Source: Dendrobates tinctorius
Lineage: Eukaryota
DNA length: 64,000 nt
Assembly: GCF_039654945.1 (NCBI RefSeq)
Contig: NW_027361869.1
Span: forward strand, 7,130,001 to 7,194,000
Direction of reading: 5' to 3'
A program made the position numbers and the translations under genes. Positions 1,520-39,900 of this stretch are shown here, one piece after another (the first letter of the stretch is position 1; every line of letters begins with the position of its first letter). Below the pieces are notes generated by a model that worked only from the letters and a program-made list of their open reading frames with translations, was not told the origin of the DNA and made no database searches.

Positions 1520-2313
1520 TGTTGTGAGTTCATTTTCCCCTTCACTACTGAGGCCCGATGAACTCCCTCTTCTGGTAAAGAAAGGTAGTGAGCCGGATTA
1601 TCAAGCACCTGAGCCTAATGATGATGACTGGCTGAGTGGAGTTACTGACTGGATATAAGGCCGCCGACGCCCTTCTGCCCTGCGGGTGAATTCTCTGTGG
1701 GATCCTTGGAGACCAGTCTGAATTCCTGCTCTTCTAAAGCTAAGTTTTCTGCTCGGCTTTTTGCATTTGTGCTTTGACTTTGTTTTGCTTTGTTTTTCTG
1801 GATTTCTGCCATTCCCTGCTGGGGTGAGCTGAATTCCTTTAGCTCTGTCTTCTGAAAATACCTGAGTGCTGATTTAGTTTTTGAAGCCTAGCTGCTTCAG
1901 GGTCTTTTTCCATATCAGCTTGTTGGCTTATGTCTTTGATAGGGTTTTGGCAGATTGCAGACAGCAACCTTTCTTTCCTGTTCTGTTTAGTTAGCTTGGG
2001 CCCCATCGTTTGCTCAGCCTATATTTCTATCTGTGTGAGTGTTTTTTCATCTTGCTTCAGCGTCATTATATGTTGGGGGCTGCCTTTTACTTTGGGGTCT
2101 GCTCTGGGGCAGTTTAGATTTCCTTTTCTGTCTTTAGCCTAATTAGCTCTCTGGCTGTGATCGAGGGGTCTAGGGCACCGTAGGAACCCCCCACGGCTAC
2201 TGCTAGTTGTGTTGATAGGTTCAGGGGTCTTCAATCTGATAGTTGCCAACTTCTCTTTTTTTCTGGACGTAGCTTCTATTTTTGTGTCTGCCTCCTACGG
2301 TGACTCAATCACA
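1520..2313 (+). mobile_element. Gypsy 3' LTR
   Basis: Begins TGTTGTGAG right after the PPT, has a TATA-like GATATAAG near 1652, and ends ...ATCACA where the satellite starts. The right end is approximate. Confidence 0.75.
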
Positions 2314-5300
2314 CCAGTTGGCACTGATCATACAGCTCAGCAGGGAGTAGGTGGTGGCACTGATCATACAGCTCTGCGGGGACAAAGTGGTGGCACTTAT
2401 GTTACAGCTTTGCGGGGACAAGGTGGTGGCACTGATCATACAGCTCTGCAGGGAGGAGTTGGTGGCACTGAACATACAGCTCAGCGTGGACAAAGTGGTG
2501 GCACTGATCTTAAAGCTCTACAAGGATGAGGTGGTGGTACTAATCATACAGCTCTGCAGGGAGGAGGTGGTGGCACTGATCATACAGCTCTGCGGGGACA
2601 AGATGGAGGCACTGATGATAAGGCTCTGCAGGGATGATGTGGTGGCACTGATCGTACAGGTCTGCAGGGATGAGGTGGTAGCACTCATCATACAGCTTTG
2701 CGTGGACAAGGTGGTGGCACTGATCATATAGCTCTGAGGGGATGACGTGGTGGCACTGATCAAATAGCTCTGCAGGGATTAGGTGGTGGCACTGATCATA
2801 CAGCTCTGCAAGGAGTAGGCGGTGGCACTGATTCAACAGCTGTGCGAGGAGTAGGTAGTGGTACTGATCATACAGCTCTGTGCTGACCAACTGGTGGCAC
2901 TGTTCATGCGGTGACAAGGTGGTAGCACTGATTATACAGTTCTGCGGCGACAAGGTGGGGGCACTGATCATACATGTCTGCAGGGAAAAGGTGGTGGCAC
3001 TGAACATACAGATCAGCGCGGACAAGGTGGTGGCACTGATCAGACAGCTCTACAGGGAGGAGGTTGTGGCACTAAACTGGTTTGCAGGGATGAGGTAGTG
3101 GCACTGATTATACAGCTCTGCAGTGAGAGGTGGTGGCACTGAAGATACAGCTGTGCAGGGATGAGGTGGTTGCACTGATCATACAGCTCTGCAGGGAGTA
3201 GGCGGTGGCACTGATCATACAGCTCTGCGGGGACTTGGTGGTGGTACTGATCATACAGCTCTGTGCTGACCAACTGGTGGCACTGATCATACAACTTTGT
3301 GGTGACAAGGTGGTGGCACTGATTATACAGTTCTGCAGTGACAAGGTGGTGACACTGATCATACACCTCTGCGGCGATAAGGTGGTGGTACTGATCATAC
3401 AGCTCTTCAAGGACCAGGTGGTGGCACTGATCATACAGCTTTGCGGGGACAATGTGTTTGCACTGATTATACATCTCTTAAGGTATAAGTTGGAGGCACT
3501 GATCATGCGGTTCTTCAGGGATGAGGTTGTGGCACTGATCATACAGCTCTGCAGGGATGAGGTAGTGGCACAGATCATACAGCTCTTCAGGAATGAGGTA
3601 GTGGCACAGATCATACAGCTCTGCAGAGAGGAGGTGGTGGCACTGATTAAACAGCTTTGCAGGGATGAGGTAGTGGCACAGATCCTACAGACCTGCAGGG
3701 ACAAGGTGGTGGCACTGATCATACAGCTCTGCAGGGACAAGGTGGTGACACTGATCATACACCTCTGCGGCAATAAGGTGGTGGTACTGATCATACAGCT
3801 CTGCAAGGACCAGGTGGTGGCACTAATCAAACAGCTCTGCAGAGACGAGGTGGTGGCACTGATTATACAGCTCTGCAGGGAGGAGATGGTGGCACTGATC
3901 ATACAGCTCTGCAGGAAGTAGGAGGTGGCACTGATTATACAGCTCTGTGTGGATAAGATGGTGGCACTGATCATACAGCTCTGCAGGGAGGAGTTGGTGG
4001 CACAGATCACACAGCTCTGCAGGGATGAGGAGGTGGCACTGATCATGCAGCTCTATAGGTAAGAGGTGATGTCACTGATCATACTGCTCTGCAGGGAAGA
4101 GGTGGTGACACTGATCAAACAGCTTTGCGGGGACAAAGTGGTTGCACTGATTATACATCTCTTAAGGTATAAGTTGGAGGCACTGATCATGCGGTTCCTC
4201 AGGGATGAGGTTGTGGCACTGATCATACAGCTCTTTAGGGATGAGGTAGTGGCACAGATCATACAGCTCTGCAGAGAGGAGGTGGTGGCACTGATTATAC
4301 AGCTTTGCAGGTAGGAGATGGTGGCACTGATCATAAAGCTCTGCAGGGAGTAGGTGGAGGCACTGATCATACAGCTCTGCGGGGAGAATTTGATTGCACT
4401 GATCGTACAGCTCTGCTCGGACAAAGTGGTGGCACTTATGATACAGCTTTGTGGGGACAAGGTTGTGGCACTGATCATACAGCTCTTTAGGGATGAGGTA
4501 GTGGCACAGATCATACAGCTCTTCAGAGAGGAGGTGGTGGCACTGATTATACAGCTTTGCAGGTAGGAGATGGTGGCACTGATCATAAAGCTCTGCAGGG
4601 AGTAGGTGGAGGCACTGATCATACAGCTCTGCGGGGAGAATTTGATTGCACTGATCATACAGCTCTGCGGGGAGAATTTGATTGCACTGATCGTACAGCT
4701 CTGCTCGGACAAAGTGGTGGCACTTATGATACAGCTTTGTGGGGACAAGGTGGTGGCACTGATCATACAGCTCTGCAGTGACTAGGTTGTGGCACTGATC
4801 ATGCAGTTCTGCAGGGATGAGGTGGTGGCACTGATCATACAGCTCTGCAGGGAAAATTTGGTGACACTGATCATACACCTCTGCGTCGACAAGGTGGTGG
4901 TACTGATCATACAGCTGTGCAAGGACCAGGTGGTGGCACTGATCATAAAGCTCTGCAGAGAGGAGGTGGTGGCACTGATTATACAGCTTTGCAGGGAGGA
5001 GATGGTGGCACTGATCATACAGCTCTGTGGGGACAATTTGATGGCACTGATCAAACAGCTCTGCTCAGATAAAGTGGTGGCACTTATGATACAGCTTTGC
5101 GGGGACAAGGTGGTGGCACTGAACATATAGCTCAGCGTGGACAAGGTGGTGGCTCTGATCTTAAAGCTCCACAAGGATGAGGTGTAGGTACTAATCATAC
5201 TGCTCTGCAGGGAGGAGATGGTGGCACTGATCATACAGCTCTGCGGGGACAAGATGGTGGCACTGATCATGAAGATCTGCAGGGATGATGTGGTGGCACT

Positions 5301-8300
5301 GATGATACAGGTCTGCAGAGATGAGGTGGTAGCACTCCTCATACAGCTTTGCAGGGACGAGGTGGTGGCACTGATCATACAGCTTTTCATGGACAAGGTG
5401 GTGGCACTGATCAAACAGCTCTGCAAGGACGAGGTGTTGGCACTGATCATACAGCTTTGCGGGGACAATGTGGTTGCACTGTTTCTACATCTCTTTAGGT
5501 ATAAGTTGGATGCACTGATCAGGGATGATGTTGTGGCACAGATCATACAGCTCTGCAGAGAGGAGGTGGTGGCACTGATTACACAGCTTTGCAAGGAGGA
5601 GATGGTGGCACTGATCATACAGCTCTGCTCGGACAAAGTGGTGGCACTTATGATACAGCTTTGTGGGGACAAGGTGGTGGCACTGATCATACAGCTCTGA
5701 AGTGACGAGGTTGTGGCACTGATCATGCAGTTCTGCAGGGATGAGGTAGTGGCAGCGATCATACAGCTCTGCAGGGATGATTCAGTAGCACAGATCATAC
5801 AGCCCCGCAGGGATGAGGTGGTGGCACTGATCATACAGCTCTGCAGTGAAAAGTTGGTGACACTGATCATACACCTCTGCGGCGACAAGGTGTTGGTACT
5901 GATCATACAGCTCTGCAAGGACCAGGTGGTGGCATTGATCATAAAGCTCTGCAGAGAGGAGGTGGTGGCACTAATTATTCAGCTTTGCAGGGAGCAGATG
6001 GTGGCACTGATCATACAGTTCTGTGGGGACAATTTGATGGCACTGATCATACAGCTATGCTCGGACAAAGTGGTGGCACTTATGATACAGCTTTGCGGGG
6101 ACAAGGTGGTGGCACTGAACATATAGCTCAGCGTGGACAAGGTGGTGGCTCTGATCTTAAAGCTCTACAAGGATGAGGTGGAGGTACTAATCGTACAGCT
6201 CTGCAAGGAGGAGGTTGTGGCACTGAGCAAACAGCTCTGCATGGAAAGGTGGTGGCACTGAACATACAGCTCAGCGTGTACAAGGTGGTGGCACTGAACA
6301 TACAGCTCAGCGTGTACAAGGTGGTGGCACTGATCAGACAGCTCTACAGGGAGGAGGTAGTGGCACTGATCATACAGCTCTGCCGGTATGAGGTGATGGC
6401 ACTGAAGATACAGCTCTGCAGGGATGAGGTGGTTGAACTGATCTTGCAGCTCTGCAGGGAGTAGGTGGTGGCACTGATCTTAAAGCTCTGCGGGGACAAT
6501 TTGATGGCACTGATCATACAGCTCTGCTCACACAAAGTGGTGGCACTTATCATACAGCTTTGTGGGGACAAGGTGGTGGCACTGATCATGCACTTCTGCA
6601 GGGATGAGGTAGCGGCACCGATCATACAGCTCTGCAGGGATGATTCAGTAGCACAGATCATACAGCCTGCAGGGATGAGGTGGTGGCGTGTCACTGATCA
6701 TACAGCTCTGCAGGGAAAAGTTGGTGACACTGATCATACACCTCTGCGGCGACAAGGTGGTGGTACTGATCATACAGCTCTGAAGGGAATAGGTGGTGGC
6801 ACAGATCCTACAGACCTGCAGGGACAAGGTGGTGACACTGATCATACACCTCTGCGGCGACAAGGTGGTGGTACTGATCATACAGCTCTGCAAGGACCAG
6901 GTGGTGGCACTAATCATACAGCACTGCAGAGACGAGGTGGTGGCACTGATTATACAGCTCTGCAGGGATTAGATGGTGGCACTGATCATACAGCTCTGCA
7001 GGCAGTAGGAGGTGGCACTGATTATACAGCTCTGTGTGGATAAGGTGGTGGCACTGATCATACAGCTCTGCAGGGAGGAGTTGGTGGCACTGATCATACA
7101 GCTCTGCAGGTAAGAGGTGGTGTCACTGATCATACAGCTCTGCAGGGACAATGTGGTTGCACTGATTATACATCTCTTTAGGTATAAGTTGGAGGCACTG
7201 ATCATGTGGTTCTGCAGGGATGAGGTTGTGGCACTGATCATACAGCTCTGCTCGGACAAAGTGGTGGCACTGATCATACAACTTTGCGGTGACAAGGTGG
7301 TGGCACTGATTTACAGTTCTGTGGCGACACGGTGGTGGCACTGATCATACAGGTCTGCAGGGAGGAGGTTGTCGCACTGAACATACTGGTTTTCAGGGAT
7401 GAGGTGGTGGCACAGATCATACAGCTCTGCAGAGAGGAGGTGGTGGCACTGATTATACAGCTTTGCAGGGAGGAGATGGTGGCACTGATCATACAGCTCT
7501 GCAGAGAGTAGGTGGTGGCAATGATCATACAGCTCTGCGGGGACAATTTGATGGCACTGATCATACAGCTCTGCTCGGACAAAGTGGTGGCACTTATGAT
7601 ACAGCTTTGTGGGGACAAGATGGTGGCACTGATCATACAGCTCTGCAGTGACGAGGTTGTGGCACTGATCATGCAGTTCTGCTGGGATGAGGTAGTGGCA
7701 CCGATCATACAGCTCTGCAGGGATGTTTCAGTAGCACAGATCATACAGCCCTGCAGGGATGAGGTGGTGGCACTGATCATACAGCTCTGCGGCGACAAGG
7801 TGGTGGTACTGATCATACAGCTCTGCAAGGACCAGGTGGTGGCACTGATCTTAAAGCTCTGCAGGGATGAGGTGGTGGCACTGATCATACAGCTCTGCAG
7901 AGAGGAGGTGGTGGCACTGATCATACACCTCTGCGGGGACAAGGTGGTGACACTGATTATACACGTCTGTGGCGACAAGGTGCTGGTACTGATCATACAG
8001 CTCTGCAGGGAGGAGGTGGTGGCACTGATCATACACCTCTGCAGCAACAATGTGGTGGTACTGATCATACAGCTCTGCAAGGACCAGGTGGTGGCACTGA
8101 TCTTAAAGCTCTGCAGGGATGAGGTGGTGGCACTGATCATACAGCTCTGCAGAGAGGAGGTGGTGGCACTGATTATACAGCTTTGCAGGGAGGATATGGT
8201 AGCATTGATCATTCAGCTCTGTGTGGATAAGATGGTGGCACTGATCATACAGCTCTGCAGGGACAATGTGGTTGCACTGATTATACATCTCTTTAGGGAT

Positions 8301-11166
8301 AAGTTGGAGCCACTGATCATGCAGCTCTGCAGGGATGAGGTTGTGGCACTGATCATACAGCTCTGCAGGGATGATTTAGTGGCTCAGATCATACAGCTCT
8401 GCAGGGATGAGGTAGTGGCACAGATCACACAGCTCTGCAGGGACGAGGAGGTGGCACTGATCATACAGCTCTGTGGTGAGGAGGCGGTGGCACTGATCTT
8501 ACAGCTCTGCAGGGAGTAGGTGGTGGCATTGATCATTCAGCTCTGTGTGGATAAGATGGTGGCACTAATCATGCAGCTCTGCAGGTATGAGGTGGTGTCA
8601 CTGATTATACAGCTCTGCAGGGAAGAGGTGGTGACACTGATCATACAGCTCTGCAAGGACGAGGTGTTGGCACTGATCATACAGCTTTGTGGGGACAATG
8701 TAGTTGCACTGATTATACATCTCTTTAGGGATAAGTTGGAGCCACTGATCATACAGCTCTGCAGGGACGAGGAGGTGGCACTGATCATACAGCTCTGTGG
8801 AGACAAGGTGGTGGCACTGATAATACACCTCTGCGGTGACAAGGTGGTGGTACTGATCATACAGCTCTGCAGAGAGGAGGTGGTGACACTGATCATACAG
8901 CTCTGAAGGGAATAGGTGGTGGCACTGATCATACAGCTCTGTAGGGATGAGGTGGTTGCACTGATCATACAGCTCTGTAGGGATGAGGTGGTTGCACTGA
9001 TCATACAGCTCTATGGGGAGGAGGCGGTGGCACTGATCATAAGGCTCTGTAGGGACAAGGTTGTGTCACTGATCTTACAGCTCTGCAGGGGTGAGGTAGT
9101 GGCACAGATCACACAGCGCTGCAAGGACCAGGTGGTGGCACTGATCATACAGCTCTGCAGGTACGAGGAGGTGGCACTGATCATACAGCTCTGCAGGGAC
9201 AAGGTGGTGACACTGATAATACACCTCTGAGGCGACAAGGTGGTGGTACTGATCATACAGCTCTGCAGAGAGGAGGTGGTGGCACTGATCATACAGCTCT
9301 GAAGGGAATATGTGGTGGCACTGATCATAAAGTTCTGCAGTGACGAGGTGGTGGCACTAATCATACTGTTTTGCAGGGAGGAGGTGGTGGCACTGATCAT
9401 ACAGCTCAGCAGGGAGGAGGTGGTGGCACTGATTATACAGCTCAGCAGGGACAAGGTGGTGGCACTGATCATACAGCTTTGCGGGGATAATGTGGTTGCA
9501 CTGATTATACATCTCTTTAGGGATAAGTTGGAGGCACTGATCATGCAGTTCTGCAGGGATGAGATAGTGGCTCAGATCATACAGCTCTGCAGGGATGATT
9601 CAGTAGAACAGATCATACAGCCCTGTAGGGATGAGGTGATGGCACTGATCATACAGCTCTGCAGGGAAAAGTTGGTGACACTGATCATACAGCTCTGCTC
9701 GCACAAAGTGGTGGCACTTATGATACAGCTTTGTGGGGACAAGGTGGTGTCACTGATCATGCAGTTCTGCAGGGATGAGGTAGTGACACCGATCATACAG
9801 CTCTGCAGGTATGATTCAGTAGCACAGATCATACAGCCTGCAGGGATGAGGTGGTGGCACTGATCATACACCTCTGCGGCGACAAGGTGGTGTTAATGAT
9901 CATACAGCTCTGCAAGGACCAGGTGGTGGCACTAATCATACAGCTCTGCAGAGACAAGGTGGTGGCACTGATTATACAGCTCTGCAGGGAGGAGGTTGTC
10001 GCACTGAACATACTGGTTTGCAGGGATGTGGTGGTGGCACAGATCATACAGCTCTGCAGAGAGGAGGTGGTGGCACTGATTATACAGCTTTGCAGGGAGG
10101 AGATGGTGGCACTGATCATACAGCTCTGCAGGGACAATTTGATGGCACTGATCATACAGCTCTGCTCGGACAAAGTGGTGGCACTTATGATACAGCTTTG
10201 TGGGGACAAGATGTTGGCACTGATCATACAGCTCTGCAGTGACGAGGTCGTGGCACTGATCATGCAGTTCTGCAGGGATGAGGTAGTGGCACCGATCATA
10301 CAGCTCTGCAGGGATGTTTCATTAGCACAGATCATACAGCCCTGCAGGGATGAGGTGGTGGCACTGATCATACAGCTCTTCAGGGAAAAGTTGGTGACGC
10401 TGATCATACACCTCTGCGGCGACAAGGTGGTGGCACTGATTATACAGTTCTGCGGCGACAAGGTGGTGGCACTGATCACACAGGTCTGCAGGGAAAAGGT
10501 GGTGTTATTGAACATACAGCTCAGCGCGGACAAGGTGGTGGCACTGATCAGACAGCTCTACAGGGAGGAGGTTGTGGCACTAAACCTACTGGTTTGCAGG
10601 GATGAGGTTGTGGCACTGATCATACAGCTCTGCAGGGAATAGGTGGTGGCACTGATCGTGCAGCTCTGCTGGGACAAGATGGTGGTACTGATCATAAAGC
10701 TCTGCAGGGATGATGTAGTGGCACTGATCATACAGGTCTGCAGAGACGAGGTGGTGGCACTGATCATACAACTTTTCGTGGACAAGGTGGTGGCACTGAT
10801 CAGACAGCTTTGCGTGTACAAGGTGGTGGCACTAATCAGGTAGCCCTGAGGGGATGACGTGGTGGCACTGATCAAAAAGCTCTGCAGGGATTAGGTGGTG
10901 GCACTGATCATACAGCTCTGCAAGGAGTAGGCGGTGGCACTGATCATACAGCTTGCGTTGACAATGTGGTGGCACTGATTATACAGTTCTGCGGCGAAAA
11001 GGTGGTGGCACTGATCATACAGCTCTGCATGTAAAGGTGGTGGCACTGAACATACAGCTCTGCAGGGAAAAGGTGGTGGCACTGAACATACAGGTCAGCA
11101 GGGACGAGGTGGTGGCACTCATTATAGAACTCTGCAGGGGTGAAGTGGTGGCACTGATCATACAGG
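2314..11166. repeat. 30-bp satellite array A (about 295 units, divergent, mosaic higher-order blocks)
   Basis: Consensus GGTGGTGGCACTGATCATACAGCTCTGCAGGGA(T/C/G)GA-type 30-mer, uninterrupted for about 8.8 kb. Confidence 0.98.
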
Positions 11167-12164
11167 CCAAAAATGGGGGACGGGGTATGGAGTATGGCAT
11201 GCGGATGGAGAGCACATTGATGCTGGAACCAGCGCGTCGCCTATCACGCTCCCCCATCAGTACATAGGTTTTCATCTGTGCTTTTTTTTTTAGTAATTAC
11301 AGAAAAGCAGGAGGATTTGTGGTTTATTGGCTTAATTAATTTTCTTCTGTTACATAATATTTGTTCAGTGAACCTGCGGATAATTACACTACACTAATGT
11401 GGGGTTAACCCTCTGTGTAGCTCTAGGACTTTTCACCAATGATGGCAATTAGCTCGATCTGCACGTGCCGCAATCTCCTCAGTCACTTACAGTATTATCG
11501 GGACTCCCAGCTGTTTCTGCACTGATTACAGGGGGCTATAAGCAGCAGATGTTCTCGAGGAGCCCGATGTGAGATGAAGGTGGCGCATCTGTGAACACTC
11601 TGGTAAATAAGAGGGGATCAGCAGGAACAAGGCAAGTAAGAGGTTAAACAGAGGAGGAAAGGCGTCTATGTACATCGCTGAAGGCTGAGGGCGGCGCTTA
11701 ACCGAGGATTCCCGCTCATTGTCTGATCGCAGGATCCGTTTGGGGATTTGAACTTCCCGCTCTTCTTCCGCCGAGGATTATTAGCGGACATCACAATCCG
11801 GTCACACAGAGAACCGCGCAGAGTCCGGCCCTCCAGAGCCGCCATCACGGGATCGCCCTCCGGGAGGAGCAGCAGTCACTGATGTGGACAATCACCGGCC
11901 GCCATCCCCCGATACTCCGGGACGTGATAACCGCATGTAATCTCCACAGCGGAGTCAGGGGCCCGAGTATCAAGACATTCACTAATGAGGGACATTTCCT
12001 GTGACTATTCGAGGACTCCTCTCCCCACACAGGTCTGAGGCTTCATGTGATAACCCAGACATGGGCATCCTCAGTGTTTTGTGTTGAACCCCGGAATCAA
12101 GTGTGTATGGGCACCAACCTACAAACTGGTGGCGGCAGCCCGTGGTGTCTAACGTCAGTCCCAT

Positions 12165-15100: not shown

Positions 15101-15371
15101 GTTTCGGTAATGGCGAGGAAGGAGAGTTTGGTAGTAACAAAAAGATCATGGATGTAGGAAAGCTTGTTGCAGACAGAGCGAGCGTTCCACAGAGCTCCTG
15201 TTAGTGGGACTGGGGAAGCGGGGGCTGGGTGAATGGGTATAAGGTTGGAGAGGTTACGGAAGGTTGTGATAGAGTGTGGATGGGAGGTAGAAATGACTGT
15301 GGGAATGTGGTGAGGAGGACCAGGATTTGGGGAGATATCGCCAGCAGTGAGAAGGAGCAGAGAAAGTGTCA
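12165..15371 (-). mobile_element. L2-clade LINE, 5'-truncated, young
   Basis: Uninterrupted EN-RT frame, 3' stem-loop (AGCGCCAT..ATGGCGCT) and (AAT)n tail. 9-bp TSD CAGTCCCAT at 12156-12164 and 15372-15380. Confidence 0.95.
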
Positions 15372-15372
15372 C
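12400..15372 (-). CDS. L2 ORF2 (2A-like peptide, APE endonuclease, reverse transcriptase); no ATG at the 5' end
   Basis: WNARS, ITETWL, MGDFN, TLDL, SDH endonuclease motifs; [25 protein letters not shown] motifs. Confidence 0.92.
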
Positions 15373-15430
15373 AGTCCCATGTGAGCACGCAGAGATCAGC
15401 GGCGTCAGCTCTTGTGGCGACGGTGTGGGT

Positions 15431-15446
15431 GGCTCTTAGAAGAGCC
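15431..15446 (-). terminator. H2A histone 3' stem-loop, with HDE CAAGAGCTG at about 15406-15414
   Basis: AAA-GGCTCT TCTA AGAGCC-ACCCA on the minus strand. Confidence 0.95.
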
Positions 15447-15479
15447 TTTGGTGTTGTGGACAGAGATCGGCGGCAGCGC

Positions 15480-16567
<1,088 letters not shown>

Positions 16568-16601
16568 TCTGCTCAGTCTGCTGCTCCGCCATCACCCCAA
16601 A

Positions 16602-16617
16602 GGCTCTTCTAAGAGCC
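16602..16617 (+). terminator. H2B stem-loop, with HDE CAGAGCTGT at about 16633-16641
   Basis: AAA-GGCTCT TCTA AGAGCC-ACCA. Confidence 0.95.
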
Positions 16618-17669
16618 ACCACCCCATCTCCATCAGAGCTGTGGCTGCTCCTGTGTCCTTTCCCGTCTCCCCGAGTTGTCTGCTCCACCGCCTGGGTCTC
16701 TGCGTCTAGTGACGGGAAGTGACAGGTGAAGGAAGTAGGGATGATGAATGCTACCAAGGAGATTGTGAGAACCGAGGACCTTCTAAATAATAACCTGGTC
16801 ACTTCTCCATAAGTTGCTCTGTGTTCAGGGACTACTCTTTAACCCCTTGCTCCACAGATCTTGATATTCTGGGGTCTCATTCATTTGGTATAACATGATT
16901 CGGTTTAGTTCATGATACACCATGATGACTAATAACACTTTCTAAGCCGGGATGCTTTGAGACTGAATTTTCTCCCCCATGCAGCACCAGACAGTGAGCT
17001 GACGATTTTCCTCTCTGCACTTAGTTCATGATTCTCGTGTTTTTCTCAAATAACAGGAGACATTTGTAGTCGGTGCAGTTTTATCTAGAGATTATGCTGG
17101 AGTCTTCACTGTAAAGGGAAGCGGTGACGACATTTTAGAAGCAGCGGGAAATTCAAACCCCCTAACCGTCCTGTGTTCAGCCAATCCGCAGAGGGAGGGG
17201 AGGAGCTAATGTTCCCAATGGTTGACACGTTTGCAGCTCCCGCTTTTTCTGTTCTTTGTCTCCATATAACGCGCGGTCCCAGGACGGAGCGATGTCGGGG
17301 AATCTGCAGGTGTTGAGAGGTCGCTGGTCGCTTACATCCCATACAGGAGTCTGCAGCTGTTCCTGGTTAGAGAATGAATCCGCGTTAGGCAGATGCTGTG
17401 ATGCCCCGTGTGTCTGACCTGCAGGCGATCACATCTCCCTTTCTCGTCATAATCAGTATTGTGGAGACAATATATTGGCTAGAGATGTATCCTACAAGAG
17501 ACATTTCAGGGGAGACCAATTCTGCTCTTCCAAGCAGATCCCACCTGCAGCTCCAGGCAGGAGGTCTGTGATGGGAAATGTGCGATCATGTAGAGAAGAT
17601 TGCCGAGAGCTCAGTGCACAATACATTACACTGTGATGTCAGGATCCTCTAGGTCAGACATGTCATGAC

Positions 17670-20600
17670 TAGTGTTGAGCATTCCGATACCGCAAGTATC
17701 GGGTATCGGCCGATACTTGCTGTATCGGAATTCCGATACCGACTTCCGATATTTTTTCAATATCGGAATTCGGCATCGGAATCGGAAGTTCAGTTGATTG
17801 ACGGCCTGACGTCATCATGATGCGCGGTGTGTGCGCATCATGATGCGCCGTCATTTCGGGCCTTCCGGGGGTCTCTGCCGGCCTGCCGGGGGGCTGTGTG
17901 GACTGCCCGGGGTCTCTGCCGGCCTGCCGGGGGGCTGTGCCGGCCTGCCGGGGGGCTGTGCACCCTGTGGGGGTCTGTACCGGCCTGCCGGGGGGCTGTG
18001 CCGGCCTGCCGGGGGGCTGTGCTGATGTCCGGGGGTCTGTGCAAGCATCGTCCGATGGGACTACAAGTCCCATCGGGCGATGCCTGCTACCATGACAGTG
18101 ATTGACACATTAGCCAATGATGGGACAGTAGTAGTCCCATCATCCGGCTAATGTGTTAAATGTTAAAAAAAAAATAAAAAAAAATACTACATACATACTA
18201 CATGCTACATACATACTACATATATACTACATACATACTACATACATGCTACATACATACTACATGCATGCTACATACATACTACATATATACTACATAC
18301 ATACTGCATGCTACATACATACTACATACATACTACATATATACTACATGCATGCTACATATATACTACATGCTACATACATACTACATACATACTACAT
18401 GCATGCTACATATATACTACATGCATGCTACATATATACTACATACATACTACATATATACTACATACATGCTACATACATACTACATACATACTACATA
18501 TATACTACATGCATGCTACATATATACTACATGCTACATACATACCACATACATACTACATACATGCTACATATATACTACATGCATGCTACATACATAC
18601 TACATATATACTACATGCATGCTACATACATACTACATGCTACATGCATGCTACATACATACTACATACATACTACATGCTACATACATACCACATATAT
18701 ACTACATACATACAATACATTCATACAATACATACATAGACATACAGTACATATAACATAGAGTAACATACTTACCAATACTTGTCACATTGTTCCCCGA
18801 AGCCATTGTCTTTCCGGAATAAATATTAACATAACAAACCACAAAAATACTCACCCACGATCCGAAGCAGTCCACGAGTGTGTCCCACGACGATCTTGGG
18901 TAGAGAACGGCAGCATCAGATGATGCTGCCGTTCTCTACGGGCTGCAGGAATCCAATGACGGAAGGTAGGTATCCTTCCGCACTGTATTCCTCCGCCACT
19001 TAAAAAAAAAAAAGTCCCTAGTCTCACTTTATGCCATTGCTGCGTGGGAAATTCCCACACAGCAATGGCATAAAGTGAGACTAGGGACTTTTTTTTTTTT
19101 TAAGTGGCGGAGGAATACAGTGCGGAAGGATACCTACCTTCCGTCATTGGATTCCTGCAGCCCGTAGAGAACGGCAGCATCAGCTGATGCTGCAGTTCTC
19201 TACCCAAGATCGTCGTGGGACACACTCGTGGACTGCTTCGGATCGTGGGTGAGTATTTTTGTGGTTTGTTATGTTAATATTTATTCCGTAGACGACAATG
19301 GCTTCGGGGAACAATGTGACAAGTATTGGTAAGTATGTTACTCTATGTTATATGTACTGTATGTCTATGTATGTATTGTATGAATGTATTGTATGTATGT
19401 AGTATATATGTGGTATGTATGTAGCATGTAGTATGTATGTAGTATGTATGTAGCATGCATGTAGCATGTAGTATGTATGTAGCATGCATGTAGTATATAT
19501 GTAGTATGTATGTAGCATGCATGTAGTATATATGTAGCATGTATGTAGTATGTATGTGGTATGTATGTAGCATGTAGTATATATGTAGCATGCATGTAGT
19601 ATATATGTAGTATGTATGTAGCATGTATGTAGTATATATGTAGTATGTATGTAGTATATATGTAGCATGCATGTAGTATATATGTAGTATGTATGTAGTA
19701 TATATGTAGCATGCATGTAGTATATATGTAGTATGTATGTAGTATATATGTAGCATGTATGTAGTATGTATGTAGCATGCATGTAGCATGTAGTATGTAT
19801 GTAGCATGCATGTAGTATATATGTAGTATGTATGTAGCATGCATGTAGTATATATGTAGCATGCATGTAGTATGTATGTGGTATGTATGTAGTATATATG
19901 TAGTATGTATGTGGTATGTATGTAGTATATATGTAGTATGTATGTAGTATATATGTAGTATGTATGTAGTATATATGTAGCATGTATGTAGTATGTATGT
20001 AGCATGCATGTAGCATGTAGTATGTATGTAGCATGCATGTAGTATATATGTAGTATGTATGTAGCATGCATGTAGTATATATGTAGTATGTATGTAGCAT
20101 GCATGTAGTATATATGTAGCATGCATGTAGTATATATGTAGTATGTATGTAGTATATATGTAGCATGTATGTAGTATGTATGTAGCATGCATGTAGCATG
20201 TAGTATGTATGTAGCATGCATGTAGTATATATGTGGTATGTATGTAGCATGCATGTAGTATATATGTAGCATGCATGTAGTATATATGTAGTATGTATGT
20301 AGCATGCATGTAGTATATATGTAGCATGCATGTAGTATATATGTAGCATGCATGTAGTATATATGTAGTATGTATGTAGTATATATGTAGCATGTATGTA
20401 GTATGTATGTAGCATGCATGTAGCATGTAGTATGTATGTAGCATGCATGTAGTATATATGTAGTATGTATGTAGCATGCATGTAGTATATATGTAGTATG
20501 TATGTAGTATATATGTAGTATGTATGTTGCATGTAGTATGAATGTAGCATGTATGTAGTATGTATGTAGCATGCATGTAGCATGTAGTATGTATGTAGCA

Positions 20601-21293
20601 TGCATGTAGTATATATGTAGTATGTATGTAGCATGCATGTAGTATATATGTAGCATGCATGTAGTATATATGTAGTATGTATGTTGCATGTAGTATGAAT
20701 GTAGCATGTATGTAGTATGTAGTATGAATGTAGCATGTAATTTTTTTTTTTTTTTTTTTTTTTACATTTAACACATTAGCCGGATGATGGGACTACTACT
20801 GTCCCATCATTGGCTAATGTGTCAATCACTGTCATGGTAGCAGGCATCGCCCGATGGGACTTGTAGTCCCATCGGACGATGCCTGCACAGACCCCCGGAG
20901 CCTGCACAGACCACCGGCAGGCCGGCACAGCCCCCCGGCAGGCCGGCACAGCCCCCCGGAGCCTGCACAGACCACCGGCAGGCCGGCACAGACCACCGGA
21001 GCCTGCACAGACCCCCTGGCAGGCCGGCACAGCCCCCCGGCAGGCCGGCACAGCCCCCCGGAGCCTGCACAGACCCCCTGGCAGGCCGGCACAGCCCCCC
21101 GAAAGGCCCGTACAGACCCCAGAGAGGCTGTACAAGGGCAGGAAAGGGTTTTTCTTATTCCGATACCGGAAGACCCATAGACTTGAATGGGACTTCCGGT
21201 ATCGGAATCGGCGATACCGATACTTTTTTTAAAGATCGGCCGATACCATCCGATACGATACTTTGAAGTATCGGATGGTATCGCTCAACTCTA
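17670..21293. mobile_element. Non-autonomous hAT foldback element (palindrome centred near 19050) with GC-rich minisatellite and TACA-type microsatellite in each arm
   Basis: TIRs TAG(T/A)GTTGAGC; 8-bp TSD GTCATGAC at 17662-17669 and 21294-21301; arms are reverse complements. Confidence 0.9.
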
Positions 21294-21951: not shown

Positions 21952-22453
<502 letters not shown>

Positions 22454-27747: not shown

Positions 27748-28128
27748 GGTTTTCCGATTTCCTCTTTTCAGCTGCAACGGCCAAAACCCAGTGATCGTAG
27801 AGCTCGCGGAGACTCTTCACTTATCCCAGAAGGCACTGGGAATATGCAAATGATCTCCTCAAGACTCTTCCCCTGGTTTTCCGATTTCCTCTTTTCAGCT
27901 GCAACGGCCAAAACCCAGTGATCGTAGAGCTCGCGGAGACTCTTCACTTATCCCAGAAGGCACTGGGAATATGCAAATGATCTCCTCAAGACTCTTCCCC
28001 TGGTTTTCCGATTTCCTCTTTTCAGCTGCAACGGCCAAAACCCAGTGATCGTAGAGCTCGCGGAGACTCTTCACTTATCCCAGAAGGCACTGGGAATATG
28101 CAAATGATCTCCTCAAGACTCTTCCCCT
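27748..28128 (-). repeat. CR1 5'UTR tandem monomers, 3 x 127 bp
   Basis: Identical units starting at 27748, 27875 and 28002. Confidence 0.95.
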
Positions 28129-28559
28129 GGACCAATCGATAGACGTGCTTCCTCCTCCGTTTAACTCCTTATTGCCCTTCTACCTGCTGCTCCTCATGTA
28201 CACGTGTTCTCCCGGCAGCGCTCAGCACATCGGGCTCCTCCTGGTAGAACATGTGCGGATTGTATCATCCGATCTGTGCTAGATGCGGCCTCCTGTGATC
28301 AGTGCGGACCCCACACGGAGACGCCCAGATATAACGTTACCGGGTCTCCGTGTGGCGTCCGCTCCGATCACTGCTGGAAGTGGAGTTGAGACTGATCAGC
28401 CCTGGAGCTGCAGGCAATGTATACACACCCCGTACGGTGCTGCACATCCTCCATACCACCTACTGGGTGGTATACAGCACTACAAAGCCTACGTGTGCTG
28501 TATACTCCCCATCTAGTGCTGCAGACACAAATCCGAGAGCATCTGTTTTATATAAGCCT

Positions 28560-30990: not shown

Positions 30991-31068
30991 AGGTCAGGAA
31001 TTCGCTCTTCTTGAGGGAGGATTGGGTGGCTCTGAAAAGTCAGTTGCAGTCAGGTGGGCAGGACAGAT

Positions 31069-31548
<480 letters not shown>

Positions 31549-31951: not shown

Positions 31952-33830
31952 GGCACCGATCATACAGCTCTGCGGGGAGGAGGTGGAGGCACTGATCATA
32001 CAGCTCTGCGGGGACAGGGTGGTGGCACTGATCATACAGCTCTGCGGGGAGGAGGTGGAGGCACTGATCATACAGCTCTGCGGGGACAGGGTGTTGGCAC
32101 TGATCATACAGCTCTGCGGGGAGGAGGTGGAGGCACTAATCATACAGCTCTGCGGGGAGGAGGTGGAGGCACTGATCATACAGCTCTGCGGGGAGGAGGT
32201 GGTGGCACTGATCATACAGCTCTGCGGGGAGGAGGTGGAGGCACTGATCATACAGCTCTGCGGGGACAGGGTGGTGGCACTGATCATACAGCTCTGCGGG
32301 GAGGAGGTGGAGGCACTGATCATACAGCTCTGCGGGGACAGGGTGGTGGCACTGATCATACAGCTCTGCGGGGAGGAGGTGGTGGCACTAATCATACAGC
32401 TCTGCGAGGGACAAGGTGGTGGCACTAATCATACAGCTCTGCGAGGACAGGGTGGTGGCACTGATCATACAGCTCTGCGGGGACAGGGTGGTGGCACTAA
32501 TCATACTGCTCTGCGGGGACAGGGTGGTGGCACTGATCATACAGCTCTACGAGGACAGGGTGGTGGCACTGATCATACAGCTCTGCGGGGACAGGGTGGT
32601 GGCTCAGATCATACAGCTCTGCGAGGACAGGGTGGTGGCACTGATCATACAGCTCTGCGGGGACAGGGTGGTGGCACTGATCATACAGCTCTACGAGGAC
32701 AGGGTGGTGGCACTGATCATACAGCTCTGCGGGGACAGGGTGGTGGCTCAGATCATACAGCTCTGCGGGGACAGGGTGGTGGCACTGATCATACAGCTCT
32801 ACGAGGACAGGGTGGTGGCACTGATCATACAGCTCTGCGGGGACAGGGTGGTGGCTCAGATCATACAGCTCTGCGAGGACAGGGTGCTGGCACTGATCAT
32901 ACAGCTCTGCGGGGACAGGGTGGTGGCTCAGATCATACAGCTCTGCGGGGACAGGGTGGTGGCACTGATCATACAGCTCTACGAGGACAGGGTGGTGGCA
33001 CTGATCATACAGCTCTGCGGGGACAGGGTGGTGGCACTGATCATACAGCTCTACGAGGACAGGGTGGTGGCACTGATCATACAGCTCTGCGGGGACAGGG
33101 TGGTGGCTCAGATCATACAGCTCTGAGGGGACAGGGTGGTGGCACTGATCATACAGCTCTACGAGGACAGGGTGGTGGCACTGATCATACAGCTCTGCGG
33201 GGACAGGGTGGTGGCACTGATCATACAGCTCTGCGGGGACAGGGTGGTGGCACTGATCATACAGCTCTGCGGGGACAGGGTGGTGGCTCAGATCATACAG
33301 CTCTACGAGGACAGGGTGGTGGCACTGATCATACAGCTCTGCGGGGACAGGGTGGTGGCACTGATCATACAGCTCTACGAGGACAGGGTGGTGGCACTGA
33401 TCATACAGCTCTGCGGGGACAGGGTGGTGGCACTGATCATACAGCTCTACGAGGACAGGGTGGTGGCACTGATCATACAGCTCTGCGGGGACAGGGTGGT
33501 GGCTCAGATCATACAGCTCTGAGGGGACAGGGTGGTGGCACTGATCATACAGCTCTACGAGGACAGGGTGGTGGCACTGATCATACAGCTCTGCGGGGAC
33601 AGGGTGGTGGCACTGATCATACAGCTCTGCGGGGACAGGGTGGTGGCACTGATCATACAGCTCTGCGGGGACAGGGTGGTGGCTCAGATCATACAGCTCT
33701 ACGAGGACAGGGTGGTGGCACTGATCATACAGCTCTGCGGGGACAGGGTGGTGGCACTGATCATACAGCTCTACGAGGACAGGGTGGTGGCACCGATCAT
33801 ACAGCTCTGCGGGGACAGGGTGGTGGCTCT
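31952..33830. repeat. 30-bp satellite array B (about 63 units, homogeneous), fused to the H1 stem-loop
   Basis: Unit GGTGGCACTGATCATACAGCTCTGCGGGGACAGGGT-type; the last unit runs into GGCTCTGAAAAGAGCC. Confidence 0.98.
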
Positions 33831-33840
33831 GAAAAGAGCC
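33825..33840 (-). terminator. H1 stem-loop; HDE AGAGCTGTA at 33800-33808 lies in the first satellite unit
   Basis: AAA-GGCTCT TTTC AGAGCC-ACCA on the minus strand. Confidence 0.96.
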
Positions 33841-33867: not shown

Positions 33868-34485
33868 TTATTTCTTGGCCGCGGGCTTCTTGGCTTTCTT
33901 AGCCGGACTCTTGGCAGCTTTAGGTTTGGCCGCCTTTTTAGCCGGACTCTTCGTCGCCTTCTTAGGCTTGGGAGCGGCTTTCGACTTCTTGGGGCTCTTG
34001 GCTGCTTTCTTGGCAGCTGCAGGCTTCTTGGCCTTTTTCGGGCTCTTCTTGGCCGTGGTCAGAGCCTTCTTGGGCTTCTTCGGAGATTTGGCGGCTTTCT
34101 TAGCAGCAACGGGTTTCTTGGGCTTGGCTGCTGACTTCTTGGCCACTTTAGTCTCCTGCTTCTTGTTGAGTTTGAAGGACCCGGAGGCGCCGCTGCCCTT
34201 CACCTGGAGGAGGGTGCCCTTGGTGACCAGAGACCTGACGGCCAGCTTCAGGCGGCTGTTGTTCTTCTCTACATCGTACCCTCCGGCAGACAGCGCCTTC
34301 TTCAGGGCGGCCAGAGACACCCCACTGCGCTCCTTAGAGGCTGACACGGCTTTCACGATCAGCTCGGAGACGCCAGGACCAGAGGATTTCTTGCTGCTCT
34401 TGGCGGCGGATTTCTTTGGCTGCTTCTTGGCTTTGGCAGCCGGTTCTGCGGGAGGGGGAGCGGCGGCTGGCGCGGTCTCTGCCAT
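33868..34485 (-). CDS. H1: Somatic linker histone H1 (205 aa)
   Basis: MAETAPAA...[36 protein letters not shown], with a K/A/P-rich tail carrying SPKK motifs. Confidence 0.98.
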
Positions 34486-34549: not shown

Positions 34550-35110
34550 GGAGTCTGTTATATGTACAGGCTTACTGTGCACTGATTGGCTGCTGAGCTA
34601 CAGGCTTACTGTGCACTGATTGGCTGCTGAGCTACACCGTCCTGAGCATCTATTGGCTGACACTGCATACATGCCCCGCCTCTTCCCAGCTGAGAACGAG
34701 TGAAGCTCCGCTCTCCCCTTGTGCTTCCCTGCCCGGAATAAAAGCCCTTTACCGGCTGACACCGGACAGCAGAGCGCGCTTCCTCCGCCGCTTCTTCTTC
34801 GCCATCTTCTCCACCGACCGTCTGTAGCTGTCACTAGCAGAGACGCCGGGGAAGAGCGGAGAGGAGGTCCCGGGATCATCGCCGTCGTCCTCCAGATCTG
34901 CACATCGCTGTGTATCCGGGAAGATACATCTGCTGGGGGAACTCGTTCCTCCTGTTCCCGGCTCCTGTCACCATCACAGGGATCTTTACTACAATGTCTA
35001 TCGTACAGGACGCTGATTGTACGATGTGGGGACGACCTGGAGCTGCTGAGAGCCCAGAAGGGTAACACAGGCGATGGCTCCGCTGACTGCCGCCTCCCTG
35101 ACCTGTGACC
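34550..35110. promoter_or_regulatory. H1 promoter and adjoining CpG-rich island
   Basis: TATA-like element near 34558, three CCAAT boxes (minus strand), GC box 34673, CpG-dense to about 35110, YY1-like GCCATCTT at 34801. Confidence 0.7.
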
Positions 35111-35424: not shown

Positions 35425-36680
35425 CACAGCTGTATAGGGATGAGGTGGTGGCACTTATCATAAAGCTCTGCAGGGATGAAGTGGTGGCACTGATGATACA
35501 GGTGTGCAGGGACGAGGTGGTGGCACTGATCATACAGCTCTGCAGGGAGTAGGTGGTGGCACTGATCATACAGCTCTGTGTGGATAAGATGGTGGCACTG
35601 ATCATGCAGCTCTGCAGGGATGAGGTTGTGGCACTGATCATACAGCTCTGCAGGGATGAGGTAGTGGCACAGATCACACAGCTCTGCAAGGACCAGGTGG
35701 TGGCACTGATCATACAGCTCTGCGGCGACAAGGTGGTGGTACTGATCATACAGCTCTGCAGAGAGGAGGTGGTGGCACTGATCATAAAGTTCTGCAGTGA
35801 CGAGTTGGTAGCACTAATCATACTGCTTTTCAGGGAGGAGGTGGTGGCACTGATCATACAGCTCTGCAGGAATGAGGAGGTGGCACTGATCATACAGCTC
35901 TGCGGCGACAAGGTGGTGGCACTGATCATACAGCTCTGCGGGGACAAGGTGTTGGTACTGATCATACAGCTCTGCAAGGACCAGGTGGTGGCACTTATCA
36001 TACAGCTCTGCAGAGAGGAAGTGGTGGCACTGATCATACACCTCTGCGGCGACAAGGTGTTGGTACTGATCATACAGCTCTGCAAGGACCAGGTGGTGGC
36101 ACTTATCATACAGCTCTGCAGAGAGGAGGTGGTGGCACTGATCATGCAGCTCTGCTCGGACAAAGTGGTGGCACTTATGTTACAGCTTTGCAGGGACAAG
36201 GTGGTGGCAATGATAATACAGCTCTACAAGGATGAGGTGGTGGTACTAATCATACAGCTCTGCAGGGAGGAGGTGGTGGCACTGATCATACAGCTCTGCG
36301 GGGACAAGATGGTGGCACTGATCATAAAGCTCTGAGGGGATGACGTGGTGGCACTGATCAAATAGCTCTGCAGGGATTAGGTGGTGGCACTCATCGTACA
36401 GCTCTGCAAGGAGTAGGCGGTGGTACTGATCATACAACTTTGCGGCGACAAGGTGGTGGCACTGATCATACAGGTCTGCAGGTAAAAGGTGGTGGCACTG
36501 AACATACAGCTCAGCGCGGACAAGATGGTAGCACTGATCAGACAGCTCTACATGGAGGAGGTTGTGGCACTGAACATACTGGTTTGCAGGGATGAGGTAG
36601 TGGCACTGATCATACAGCTCTGCAGGTATGAGGAGGTGGCACTGAAGATACAGCTGTGCCTGGATGAGGTGGTTGCACCA
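35425..36680. repeat. 30-bp satellite array C (about 42 units, A-like variants)
   Basis: Same consensus and orientation as A and B. Confidence 0.97.
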
Positions 36681-36935: not shown

Positions 36936-39900
36936 CCAGGAGAAGAGTCTTGAGGAGATCATTTGCATAGAATCATAGAATCATAGAGTTGGAAGGGACC
37001 TCCTGGGCCATCTGGTCCAACCCCCTGCTCAAAGCAGGATTCGCTAAATCATCCCAGTTAGATGTCTGTCCAGCCTCTGTTTGAAGACTTCCATTGAAGG
37101 AGAACTCACCACTTCTCGTGGCAGCCTGTTCCACTCATTGATCACTCTAACTGTCAAAAAGTTTTTTCTAATATCTAATCTGTGTCTCCTCCCATTCAGC
37201 TTCATCCCATTGCTTCTAGTCTTTCCTTGTGCAAATGAGAATAAAGTTGATCCTTCTACATTGTGACAGCCCTTTAGATATTTGTAGACAGCTATTAAGT
37301 CTCCTCTCAGTCTTCTCTTTTGCAAACTAAACATTCCCAAATCCTGCAACCTTTCCTCATAAGACAGGGTTTGCAGACCGGTCACCATTCTGGTCGCTCT
37401 TTTCTGAACTTGCTCCAGTTTGTTGATGTCTTTTTTAAAATGTGGTGCCCAAAATTGGACACAATATTCCAGATGAGGTCTGACCAAAGAGGAGTAGAGG
37501 GAAATAATTACTTCACGTGATCTAGACTGTATGCTTCTGTTAATACATCCTAGAATTGCATTTGCCTTTTTTGCTGCTGCATCACACTGTTGACTCATAT
37601 TCAGTCTGTGATCTATTAGTATACCCAAGTCTTTTTCACATGTGCTGTCACTTAGCCCTATTCCTCCCATTCTATATATGCTTTTTTCATTTTTATTGCC
37701 CAGATGTAGTACTTTGCATTTCTCCCTGTTAAAAACTTATTATTATTTTTGGCTCATCTTTCATCGTTTTTAAGAGATCTCAACATGGAAGAGGCCAGGA
37801 GCCATTTGGTGAGCTGCATTTCTTGCTACATGTTCACAGACTTACCAGTGGAAAAGCCAAATTTCACATGCCACAAATGCAAGCTTGTATCCCTGTTGGA
37901 GGAAAAGTTTGGGAATTCCCATATTCCCAGTGCCTTCTGGGATAAGTGAAGAGTCTCCGCGAGCTCTACGATCACTGGGTTTTGGCCGTTGCAGCTGAAA
38001 AGAGGAAATCGGAAAACCAGTGGAAGAGTCTTGAGGAGATCATTTGCATATTCCCAGTGCCTTCTGGGATAAGTGAAGAGTCTCTACGATCACTGGGTTT
38101 TGGCCGTTGCAGCTGAAAAGAGGAAATCGGAAAACCAGGGGAAGAGTCTTGAGGAGATCATTTGCATATTCCCAGTGCCTTCTGGGATAAGTGAAGAGTC
38201 TCCGCGAGCTCTACGATCACTGGGTTTTGGCCGTTGCAGCTGAAAAGAGGAAATCGGAAAACCAGGGGAAGAGTCTTGAGGAGATCATTTGCATATTCCC
38301 AGTGCCTTCTGGGATAAGTGAAGAGTCTCCGCGAGCTCTACGATCACTGGGTTTTGGCCGTTGCAGCTGAAAAGAGGAAATCGGAAAACCAGGGGAAGAG
38401 TCTTGAGGAGATCATTTGCATATTCCCAGTGCCTTCTGGGATAAGTGAAGAGTCTCCGCGAGCTCTACGATCACTGGGTTTTGGCCGTTGCAGCTGAAAA
38501 GAGGAAATCGGAAAACCAGGGGAAGAGTCTTGAGGAGATCATTTGCATATTCCCAGTGCCTTCTGGGATAAGTGAAGAGTCTCCGCGAGCTCTACGATCA
38601 CTGGGTTTTGGCCGTTGCAGCTGAAAAGAGGAAATCGGAAAACCAGGGGAAGAGTCTTGAGGAGATCACTTGCATATTCCCAGTGCCTTCTGGGATAAGT
38701 GAAGAGTCTCCGCGAGCTCTACGATCACTGGGTTTTGGCCGTTGCAGCTGAAAAGAGGAAATCGGAAAAACCGCGCGCCTATCGGCGCGCAAATTTTGGC
38801 TCATCTTTCATCGTTTTTAAGAGATCTCAACATGGAAGAGGCCAGGAGCCATTTGGTGAGCTGCATTTCTTGCTACATGTTCACAGACTTACCAGTGGAA
38901 AAGCCAAATTTCACATGCCACAAATGCAAGCTTGTGTCCCTGTTGGAGGAAAAGTTGCAAAATCTCGAAGAGAGGTTGAAGATCATTAAGGAAGGTGAAG
39001 AGTTCTTGGACAGAGCAGAATTATCTCTTCATGTTACAGAAAGAGAAGAAATTCGAAGTGCACCTGAAGAAACCAGTACCAGGCTCTCACGCAGGAAAAC
39101 GATGAAGAAATACATCAGGATAAGACTTTGCCAACAAACAGCAACCTTGTACGCCCTCAGAGTCCTCCTGGATGGAGAAAGAAAAATGTTGTGAAGAAGA
39201 AACGGAGAGTGGTGGTCATGGGGGATTCCCTGCTGAGAGGAACAGAGGCCGCTATCTGCAGACCGGATATAACTACAAGAGAAATGTGCTGTCTTCCAGG
39301 TGCAAAAATTAAAGATGTGTCTGACAGGATATCAGGACTCTTCAGACCTACAGATGACTACCCATTCCTGCTACTACATGTGGGGACAAATGACACCGCA
39401 AGAAACGACCTGGAAACATCTGCAGAGACTTTGAAGACTTAGGCAAGAAAGTGAAAGAACTGGGAGCGCAGGTGGTCTTCTCTTCCATCCTCCCAGTGGA
39501 TGGCCATGGAACAAGGAGGTGGAATAAGATTCTGCAGGTGAACAACTGGCTACGTCGATGGTGCCGTCAGCAACGATTTGGATTTCTGGATCACGGAGTG
39601 AACTACTTATACGATGGACTACTTGCTAGAGATGGGGTGCACCTTACGAAGACTGGAAAGCATGTATTTGGAAGTCGCCTTGCTACACTTGTAAGGAGAG
39701 CTTTAAACTAGAACAACATGGGAAGGGAAGCAAAAGACCAGAAAAAGCCATACACCTGACAAATGCTATTGAGAACTCTGCTATTAGAAGTGGAAAGGAA
39801 GAACAAAGACGAAAGAATCTAATTAATAAAAATATTGGAGAAAGAGAAACCAATCACAAACTAAAATGTTTCTATACTAATGCACAAAGCATGGGCAACA

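Follow-up and report, generated by a model that had tools for sequence, protein, structure and literature searches.

The analyzed window, a 64-kb stretch of DNA, holds an amphibian histone cluster with H2A, H2B, H4, H3 and H1 genes (Table 1). Analysis of the whole window with Tandem Repeats Finder (TRF) detected one repeat family with a period of 36 bp, and not 30 bp as given in the original prediction, distributed in three arrays (A, B and C) of a single orientation, which is that of the H1, H3 and H2A genes. Array B occupies the gap between the 3' end of H1 and the H3 promoter, with 473 bp separating its far end from the H3 ATG, and typing of its units gave 52 copies where about 60 potential U7 sites had been anticipated behind H1. 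Array A is located 4.2 kb downstream of H2A, a distance that includes a 3-kb L2 insertion. The nearest relatives of the H1 protein encoded in the window were dendrobatid H1s. Assembly GCA_039654945.1 lists this H1 protein, and the spacing of H1 and H3 there agrees with that of the window; a preprint assigns the assembly to Dendrobates tinctorius, and a table in another paper, whose columns look displaced, gives the accession to a different species.

Table 1. Coordinates of histone genes, processing elements and repeat arrays in the window.
Feature	Position	Strand	Basis or remark
Array A, ~246 units	2314..11166	-	TRF (2319-11165), ~78% matches; without stem-loop
H2A stem-loop + HDE flank (ACCCACACCGTCGCCACAAGAGCTGA)	15397..15446	-	Second independent comparator; P 0.0002-0.014
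H2A gene	15483-15872	-	ORF list, Pfam
H2B gene, part masked	16100-16567	+	ORF list, Pfam
H2B stem-loop + HDE flank (ACCACCCCATCTCCATCAGAGCTGTG)	16602..16651	+	Independent comparator; scores 16-18 against the three array consensuses
H4 gene	22142-22453	+	ORF list, Pfam
H3 gene, next downstream of array B and co-oriented	31069..31479	-	ORF list; Pfam Histone 8e-49
Array B, 52 units of 36 bp	31952..33824 (TRF span 31952-33832)	-	TRF score 3151, 92% matches
H1 HDE AGAGCTGTA, within satellite unit 1	33800..33808	-	12 nt past ACCA; 9-nt U7 5'-end complement
ACCA cleavage region, first 4 nt of satellite unit 1	33821..33824	-	Placed as ACCA/ACCCA in H2B, H2A and H4 flanks
H1 mRNA 3' stem-loop GGCTCTTTTCAGAGCC	33825..33840	-	Exact pattern match; Rfam RF00032 (Histone3) 35.9 bits against gathering 34
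Histone H1 CDS, 205 aa, intact	33868..34485	-	ORF list; Pfam Linker_histone 1.4e-21
Array C, ~35 units	35436..36680	-	TRF (35436-36678, 34.5 copies), ~80% matches; upstream of the H1 promoter; without stem-loop

Several further features of the cluster were recorded. In the H1 promoter (34565-34636), an exact 34-bp tandem duplication doubles the CCAAT box (GCAGCCAATCAG, H1 sense); its second copy is absent from the contig of a related species, which has a loose end at 34599. The H2A (15428-15446, minus strand) and H2B (16602-16620, plus strand) hairpins carry the loop TCTA (GGCTCTTCTAAGAGCC), and their stems are intact, yet they score under the Rfam gathering threshold. The 3' hairpin of H3 (31026-31041, minus strand) is broken, reading CTGACTTTTCAGAGCC instead of GGCTCTTTTCAGAGCC with two of six stem pairs possible; no RF00032 match was found there in the Rfam search, and an HDE-like AAGAAGAGCG lies downstream, so that from its sequence this H3 copy may be processing-defective. 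In Ranitomeya imitator, one gene model joins H1 and a core histone across 1979 bp, and the spacer between H1 and the next histone gene measures ~950 bp, compared with 2389 bp here, which leaves space for a short array at most.

Other repeats were also present. Long arrays of an 11-bp TACATACTACA unit, associated with 21-bp GC-rich minisatellites, were found at 17859-21128 and 61934-63671; the minisatellites flank the arrays of the first site in inverted orientation, and a single one is present at the second, at the window edge. The two sites may represent copies of a single composite repeat or transposon. Tandem repeats of 127 bp (3 to 6.7 copies, 98-100% identical) occur at 27748-28130 and 37920-38769, at the 5' ends of CR1-like LINEs.

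The H1 processing site and the structure of the arrays

The hairpin downstream of the H1 stop codon spans 16 nt and consists of a 6-bp stem closed by a U-rich loop of 4 nt. Read in H1 sense past the stop codon, the sequence runs ...AAAGGCTCTTTTCAGAGCC / ACCA / CCCTGTCCCCGC / AGAGCTGTA / TGATCGGTGCC / ACCACCC..., and array B is in register from the first base past the stem, with 52 units plus one inserted base leading from 33824 down to 31952. The absence of any break between the H1 stem-loop and the array, as originally described, was thus borne out. The distance from ACCA to the HDE is 12 nt in H1, 13 nt in H2B (to AGAGCTGTG) and 12 nt in H2A (to AAGAGCTGA). By its sequence, the H1 site has the parts of a regular histone 3' processing signal, namely a hairpin, ACCA and a U7-complementary core 12 nt further on; at this predicted site, satellite unit 1 is itself the H1 HDE and sits at canonical spacing, in agreement with the identification made in the original prediction.

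The repeat unit can be written as TCAGtGCC + ACCA + CCCTGTCCCCGC + AGAGCTGTA + TGA or, starting from ACCA, as a pyrimidine spacer of 12 nt followed by the core of the HDE, AGAGCTGTA, and 11 nt that end in TCAGTGCC. The window contains 171 copies of the core where 0.76 would be expected, and the core is intact in 51 of the 52 units of array B, in 102 of the 246 units of array A (41%) and in 17 of the 35 units of array C (~49%). In the consensus of every array, ACCA lies 12 nt upstream of the HDE core, which is the natural ruler distance.

At the junction with H1, the 8 nt to the left (TCAGAGCC, the loop end and 3' arm of the hairpin) are identical at 7 of 8 positions to the last 8 nt of the unit (TCAGTGCC); by hand arithmetic, the chance of such a match at a fixed phase is 25/65536 (~4e-4). 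However, every interior and terminal copy carries TCAGTGCC and none carries the stem-arm version TCAGAGCC. The suggestion that the unit includes the 3' stem arm is thus ambiguous, as the 8-mer could just as well stem from the original sequence downstream, where it served as a direct repeat in the first slippage. Both array A and array B terminate exactly past ...GTGCC.

Unit typing of array B from the H1 end gave the pattern A/BCDCCCBECBC/BCDCCCBECBC/..., that is, an exact duplication of an 11-unit (396-bp) block at 32990-33788 (units 2-23), whose exactness indicates very recent unequal crossing-over. The distal units, on the H3 side, are of the older TCC/TCG type that resembles arrays A and C (TCCACCTCC..), and the proximal units are younger. 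No H1 remnants were detected by blastn or tblastn beside arrays A and C, and a dead H1 gene as their source is without support in the window. Two other readings of the array were considered and rejected. The long ORFs that cross it reflect a unit length of 12 codons, four of the six frames being stop-free, which is near chance (0.56 per frame), and, for a CTCF-like site, only GCCACCA fits, as judged by eye.

Resemblance to histone 3' flanks and possible origin of the family

The consensus of each array, taken as a dimer, was aligned to the segment from loop to HDE in each of the remaining histone genes, with 5000 random window segments and 5000 shuffles as null distributions. The H1 flank could not serve as a comparator, since it is the satellite itself. 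The H2B flank matched all three consensuses with scores that 0 of 5000 background segments and 0 of 5000 shuffles equaled; the H2A and H4 flanks also aligned (P 0.0008-0.013 for H4; H2A in Table 1), and the match of the H3 flank was weak. The alignments were colinear through AGnGCC, ACCAcc, the pyrimidine spacer and AGAGCTG. Because arrays A and C lack a stem-loop, their match to these flanks constitutes independent evidence of descent from a histone 3' flank. On the basis of these alignments, it is well supported that the repeat family descends from a histone 3'-processing flank, and the proposal of a satellite built from the processing signal was upheld by the colinearity with the satellite-free flanks of H2B, H2A and H4. 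Moreover, arrays A and C touch no stem-loop and are of greater age than B, implying that the family predates the array currently attached to H1. Logan H1 contigs from unrelated species showed ordinary single-copy flanks.

The array is probably a neutral minisatellite with 36-bp units that correspond to the sequence past the cleavage site of a replication-dependent histone gene, most simply H1 itself. The seed would have been an original flank of the form stem-loop(..TCAGAGCC)-ACCA-spacer-HDE-TGA-TCAGTGCC, and the array would have been born when two direct repeats of 8 nt at a distance of 36 nt, TCAGAGCC in the 3' arm and TCAGTGCC past the HDE, underwent slippage or unequal exchange; the data agree equally well with copying of the actual 3' stem arm, followed by an A-to-T mutation. 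With H1 as the donor, the array-free ancestral flank of this gene would have been a single-copy ACCACCC..AGAGCTGTATGATCAGTGCC. Subsequent growth proceeded by unequal crossing-over, visible as the 11-unit block duplication, and arrays A and C probably arose as the family was copied together with the histone cluster. The interior units would be by-products that retain a U7-complementary 9-mer and ACCA without a stem-loop and drift neutrally.

Part of the evidence would also fit a different donor, in which an H2A- or H2B-type flank, or a far older one, gave rise to the family, and the repeat later moved behind H1 through unequal recombination at the shared stem-loop/ACCA and replaced the HDE of this gene. 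Arrays A and C are both more diverged (78-80% against 92% matches) and unattached to H1, array A follows H2A in sense orientation, the units of array B farthest from H1 belong to the A/C type with younger ones next to H1, the interior copies have TCAGTGCC rather than the stem-arm sequence, and the array consensuses resemble the H2B flank. Yet the unit is much nearer to the H1 flank (scores of 30-36) than to those of H2B and H2A (11-18), although this comparison is circular, and the in-phase junction together with the canonical spacing of the HDE is most simply explained by an origin in place, which makes a foreign donor unlikely. The unit is admittedly short, its pyrimidine-rich spacer is of low complexity and minisatellites are abundant in the genome, so that a fortuitous likeness to the processing signal, or an array produced by the assembly, was also weighed; with none of 10000 controls reaching the colinear H2B-flank match, a junction match that is in phase, and satellite words recovered from independent DNA runs and from other species, either of these would be highly improbable.

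Variation within arrays, U7 pairing and transcription

Neutrality was evaluated from the variation within arrays. In array A, per-site identity averaged 0.902 in the HDE and 0.898 at the remaining non-CpG sites (Mann-Whitney p 0.93); the corresponding values for array C were 0.909 and 0.912. By parts of the unit, identity in array A ranged from 83 to 95% in the core and from 83 to 99% in the TCAGTGCCACCA block, and was lowest in the spacer. The expectation that AGAGCTGT would be the least variable part of the unit did not hold, as it ranked 15th of the 36 nine-mer windows in array A, behind the TCAGTGCCA block. No sign of purifying selection on the HDE was therefore detected in arrays A and C, based on per-site identity and, for A, on the nine-mer ranking. 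The fraction of intact 9-mers (0.41 in A and 0.50 in C) is the one obtained by multiplying the frequencies at the single sites, indicating that there was no selection on whole sites. The worst-kept positions of the unit were its two CpGs (16-17 and 22-23), with C/T and G/A mixtures as in methyl-CpG decay, and the CpG observed/expected ratio was 0.20-0.34. The uniform, near-perfect cores of array B are attributable to its youth and recent block duplication, not to constraint.

Regarding structure, no RF00032 match was found inside the array at E values up to 10, the H1 hairpin being the only one and the rest noise, and folding of the array RNA was not better than that of shuffled sequences (z = -1.38), with nothing beyond the same hairpin. 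Interior units are thus devoid of a stem-loop, keeping only the arm-like 8-mer TCAGTGCC, and offer no SLBP site. Overall, the sequence variation suggests that interior copies decay as an ordinary neutral minisatellite. Concerted evolution can blur the traces of selection within arrays, and a weak function exerted collectively, by many U7 sites of low affinity, could go without a mark at individual positions.

The purine core AGAGCUGUA is a 9-nt complement of the 5' end of human U7 (CAGUGUUACAGCUCUUUUAG), so the 9-nt match to vertebrate U7 that had been predicted holds for the human molecule; the 11-nt TACAGCTCTTT variants reported for array A, in turn, amounted to 2 of its 246 units. An anti-U7 oligonucleotide used in the field, AAAGAGCUGUAACACU, contains the HDE core (PMC12360213). 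The Rfam search revealed no U7 gene in the 64-kb window. The HDEs of H1, H2A and H2B share the core AGAGCTG, from which, together with vertebrate U7, the U7 of the host is inferred to carry a matching sequence; H3 and H4 have shorter versions that match more weakly. Predicted energies of the duplex with U7 averaged -14.8 kcal/mol for the units and ranged from -9.9 to -18.7 for the natural HDEs, but the antisense strand scored better (-15 to -17); since the measure does not discriminate between strands, it was excluded as support.

In published work, processing independent of SLBP required a strong U7 duplex of 15-16 bp, and no cleavage occurred on a substrate that lacked a stem-loop and paired with endogenous U7 over ~10 bp (PMC7026596). 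As the interior units provide 9 contiguous bp, efficient cleavage would be unlikely and binding weak at best; by analogy with those substrates, they are most likely inefficient U7 substrates.

Transcription was assessed on Logan contigs, not raw reads, from a small number of RNA datasets of unknown tissue. Satellite words from array B had a value of 0.00 in three RNA runs of the host species. In the host RNA run whose contigs were compared with the window, H1 was barely covered (depth 2.4) and no satellite was present. In an RNA run of a related species (X6), the satellite reached a depth of ~20 compared with 1000-20000 for the H1 coding region, and the 3' UTR of this species departs from the window straight after the stop codon. 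Satellite contigs were abundant in the run of another related species (X2), where a 93-nt contig spans 33803-33895 with the same stem-loop-to-flank sequence as the window as far as the HDE edge. In this run the H1 contig continues upstream of the ATG by over 300 nt, into the promoter, so that the library is likely to include DNA. The array B search also recovered satellite words from DNA runs filed under several species labels. Any read-through into the array is not abundant in the sampled tissues.

These results bear on whether the array could be functional, its stem-loop-less U7 sites serving, on read-through RNA from H1 (or H2A), for back-up cleavage or termination ahead of the H3 promoter, or for concentrating U7 snRNP at the histone locus body. 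Such a role would agree with the preservation of AGAGCUGUA in 51 of 52 units of array B with ACCA 12 nt upstream, with the common orientation of the arrays and the H1, H3 and H2A genes, with the placement of array B in precisely the interval from the 3' end of H1 to the H3 promoter, and with the persistence of the family under several species labels; read-through transcription into satellite DNA is, besides, documented on newt lampbrush chromosomes (PMC2114352). Nevertheless, the HDE shows no excess conservation in arrays A and C, where intact cores fall to 41% and 49%, block duplication accounts for the uniformity of array B, the 9 bp available fall short of what a stem-loop-less substrate needs for cleavage, the host RNA runs are empty of satellite words and the signal in the RNA run of a related species is small next to H1, and duplex energies are as good for the antisense as for the sense strand. 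We therefore consider a functional array distinctly unlikely. The fail-safe cleavage, U7 sponge and histone-locus-body scaffold put forward in the original prediction found no support, given the lack of HDE conservation, the CpG decay, the block turnover, the location of two of the three arrays away from any stem-loop and the absence of satellite words from host RNA. In a more speculative form, to which we give little credence, read-through of hundreds of co-oriented HDE units in dendrobatid histone clusters, for instance in oocytes, would recruit U7 snRNP to the histone locus body as a multivalent platform, or would make the H1-H3 interval a fail-safe zone for cleavage and termination; if true, this would be a satellite with a function drawn from an amplified RNA-processing signal. 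On the neutral reading, which the evidence suggests, arrays of a 'functional motif' can arise and persist without function.

Comparison with known systems

The family shows head-to-tail copies, higher-order blocks and several arrays, as satellites do. The literature search returned no paper with the unit sequence and none on a satellite built from an HDE, in line with the statement in the original prediction that no such satellite was known, and neither satellites nor the HDE come up in a 2026 review covering the organisation of histone genes across more than 250 species. A satellite derived from a histone 3'-processing flank, whose first unit would be the working HDE of H1, thus appears unreported. 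It may represent a clean and datable case of satellite birth, with the seed readable between two 8-nt direct repeats and the first unit still acting as the HDE of a gene. It also endows a histone locus with hundreds of natural sites that are complementary to U7 but have no stem-loop, offering a natural system in which to ask whether RNA multivalency concentrates U7 snRNP in histone locus bodies, and whether back-up sites are used when histone 3' processing fails.

With respect to the canonical histone 3' signal (RF00032, recognized by U7 snRNP and SLBP), the satellite units repeat the ACCA-spacer-HDE half at the same spacing, but interior units have no stem-loop or SLBP site, offer 9 contiguous bp to U7 and are repeated in tandem from 52 to 246 times. 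The closest precedent is that of newt histone clusters, which, according to Gall, Diaz and colleagues, are reportedly embedded in satellite DNA and read through on lampbrush loops. The newt (Notophthalmus) clusters are likewise amphibian and have tandem repeats directly downstream of histone genes, placed for read-through; their satellite units measure hundreds of bp and are not known to derive from the processing signal, whereas the unit described here is the processing flank itself.

Satellites derived from parts of multicopy genes offer a second parallel. The frog satellite PcP190 derives from 5S rDNA (PMC4201667), and in this case, as in tRNA- and snRNA-derived repeats, the unit traces back to part of a multicopy gene and has spread within or near the gene family. 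The present family differs in that the donor would be a short cis-acting RNA-processing element rather than a gene body, and in that the array is still joined to a working gene, to which it would supply the HDE. Finally, the family shares with GC-rich minisatellites a short unit, the asymmetry between a C-rich and a G-rich strand, block duplications, CpG decay and unequal array sizes, but, unlike them, it has an identifiable seed, which in unit 1 appears to be functional.
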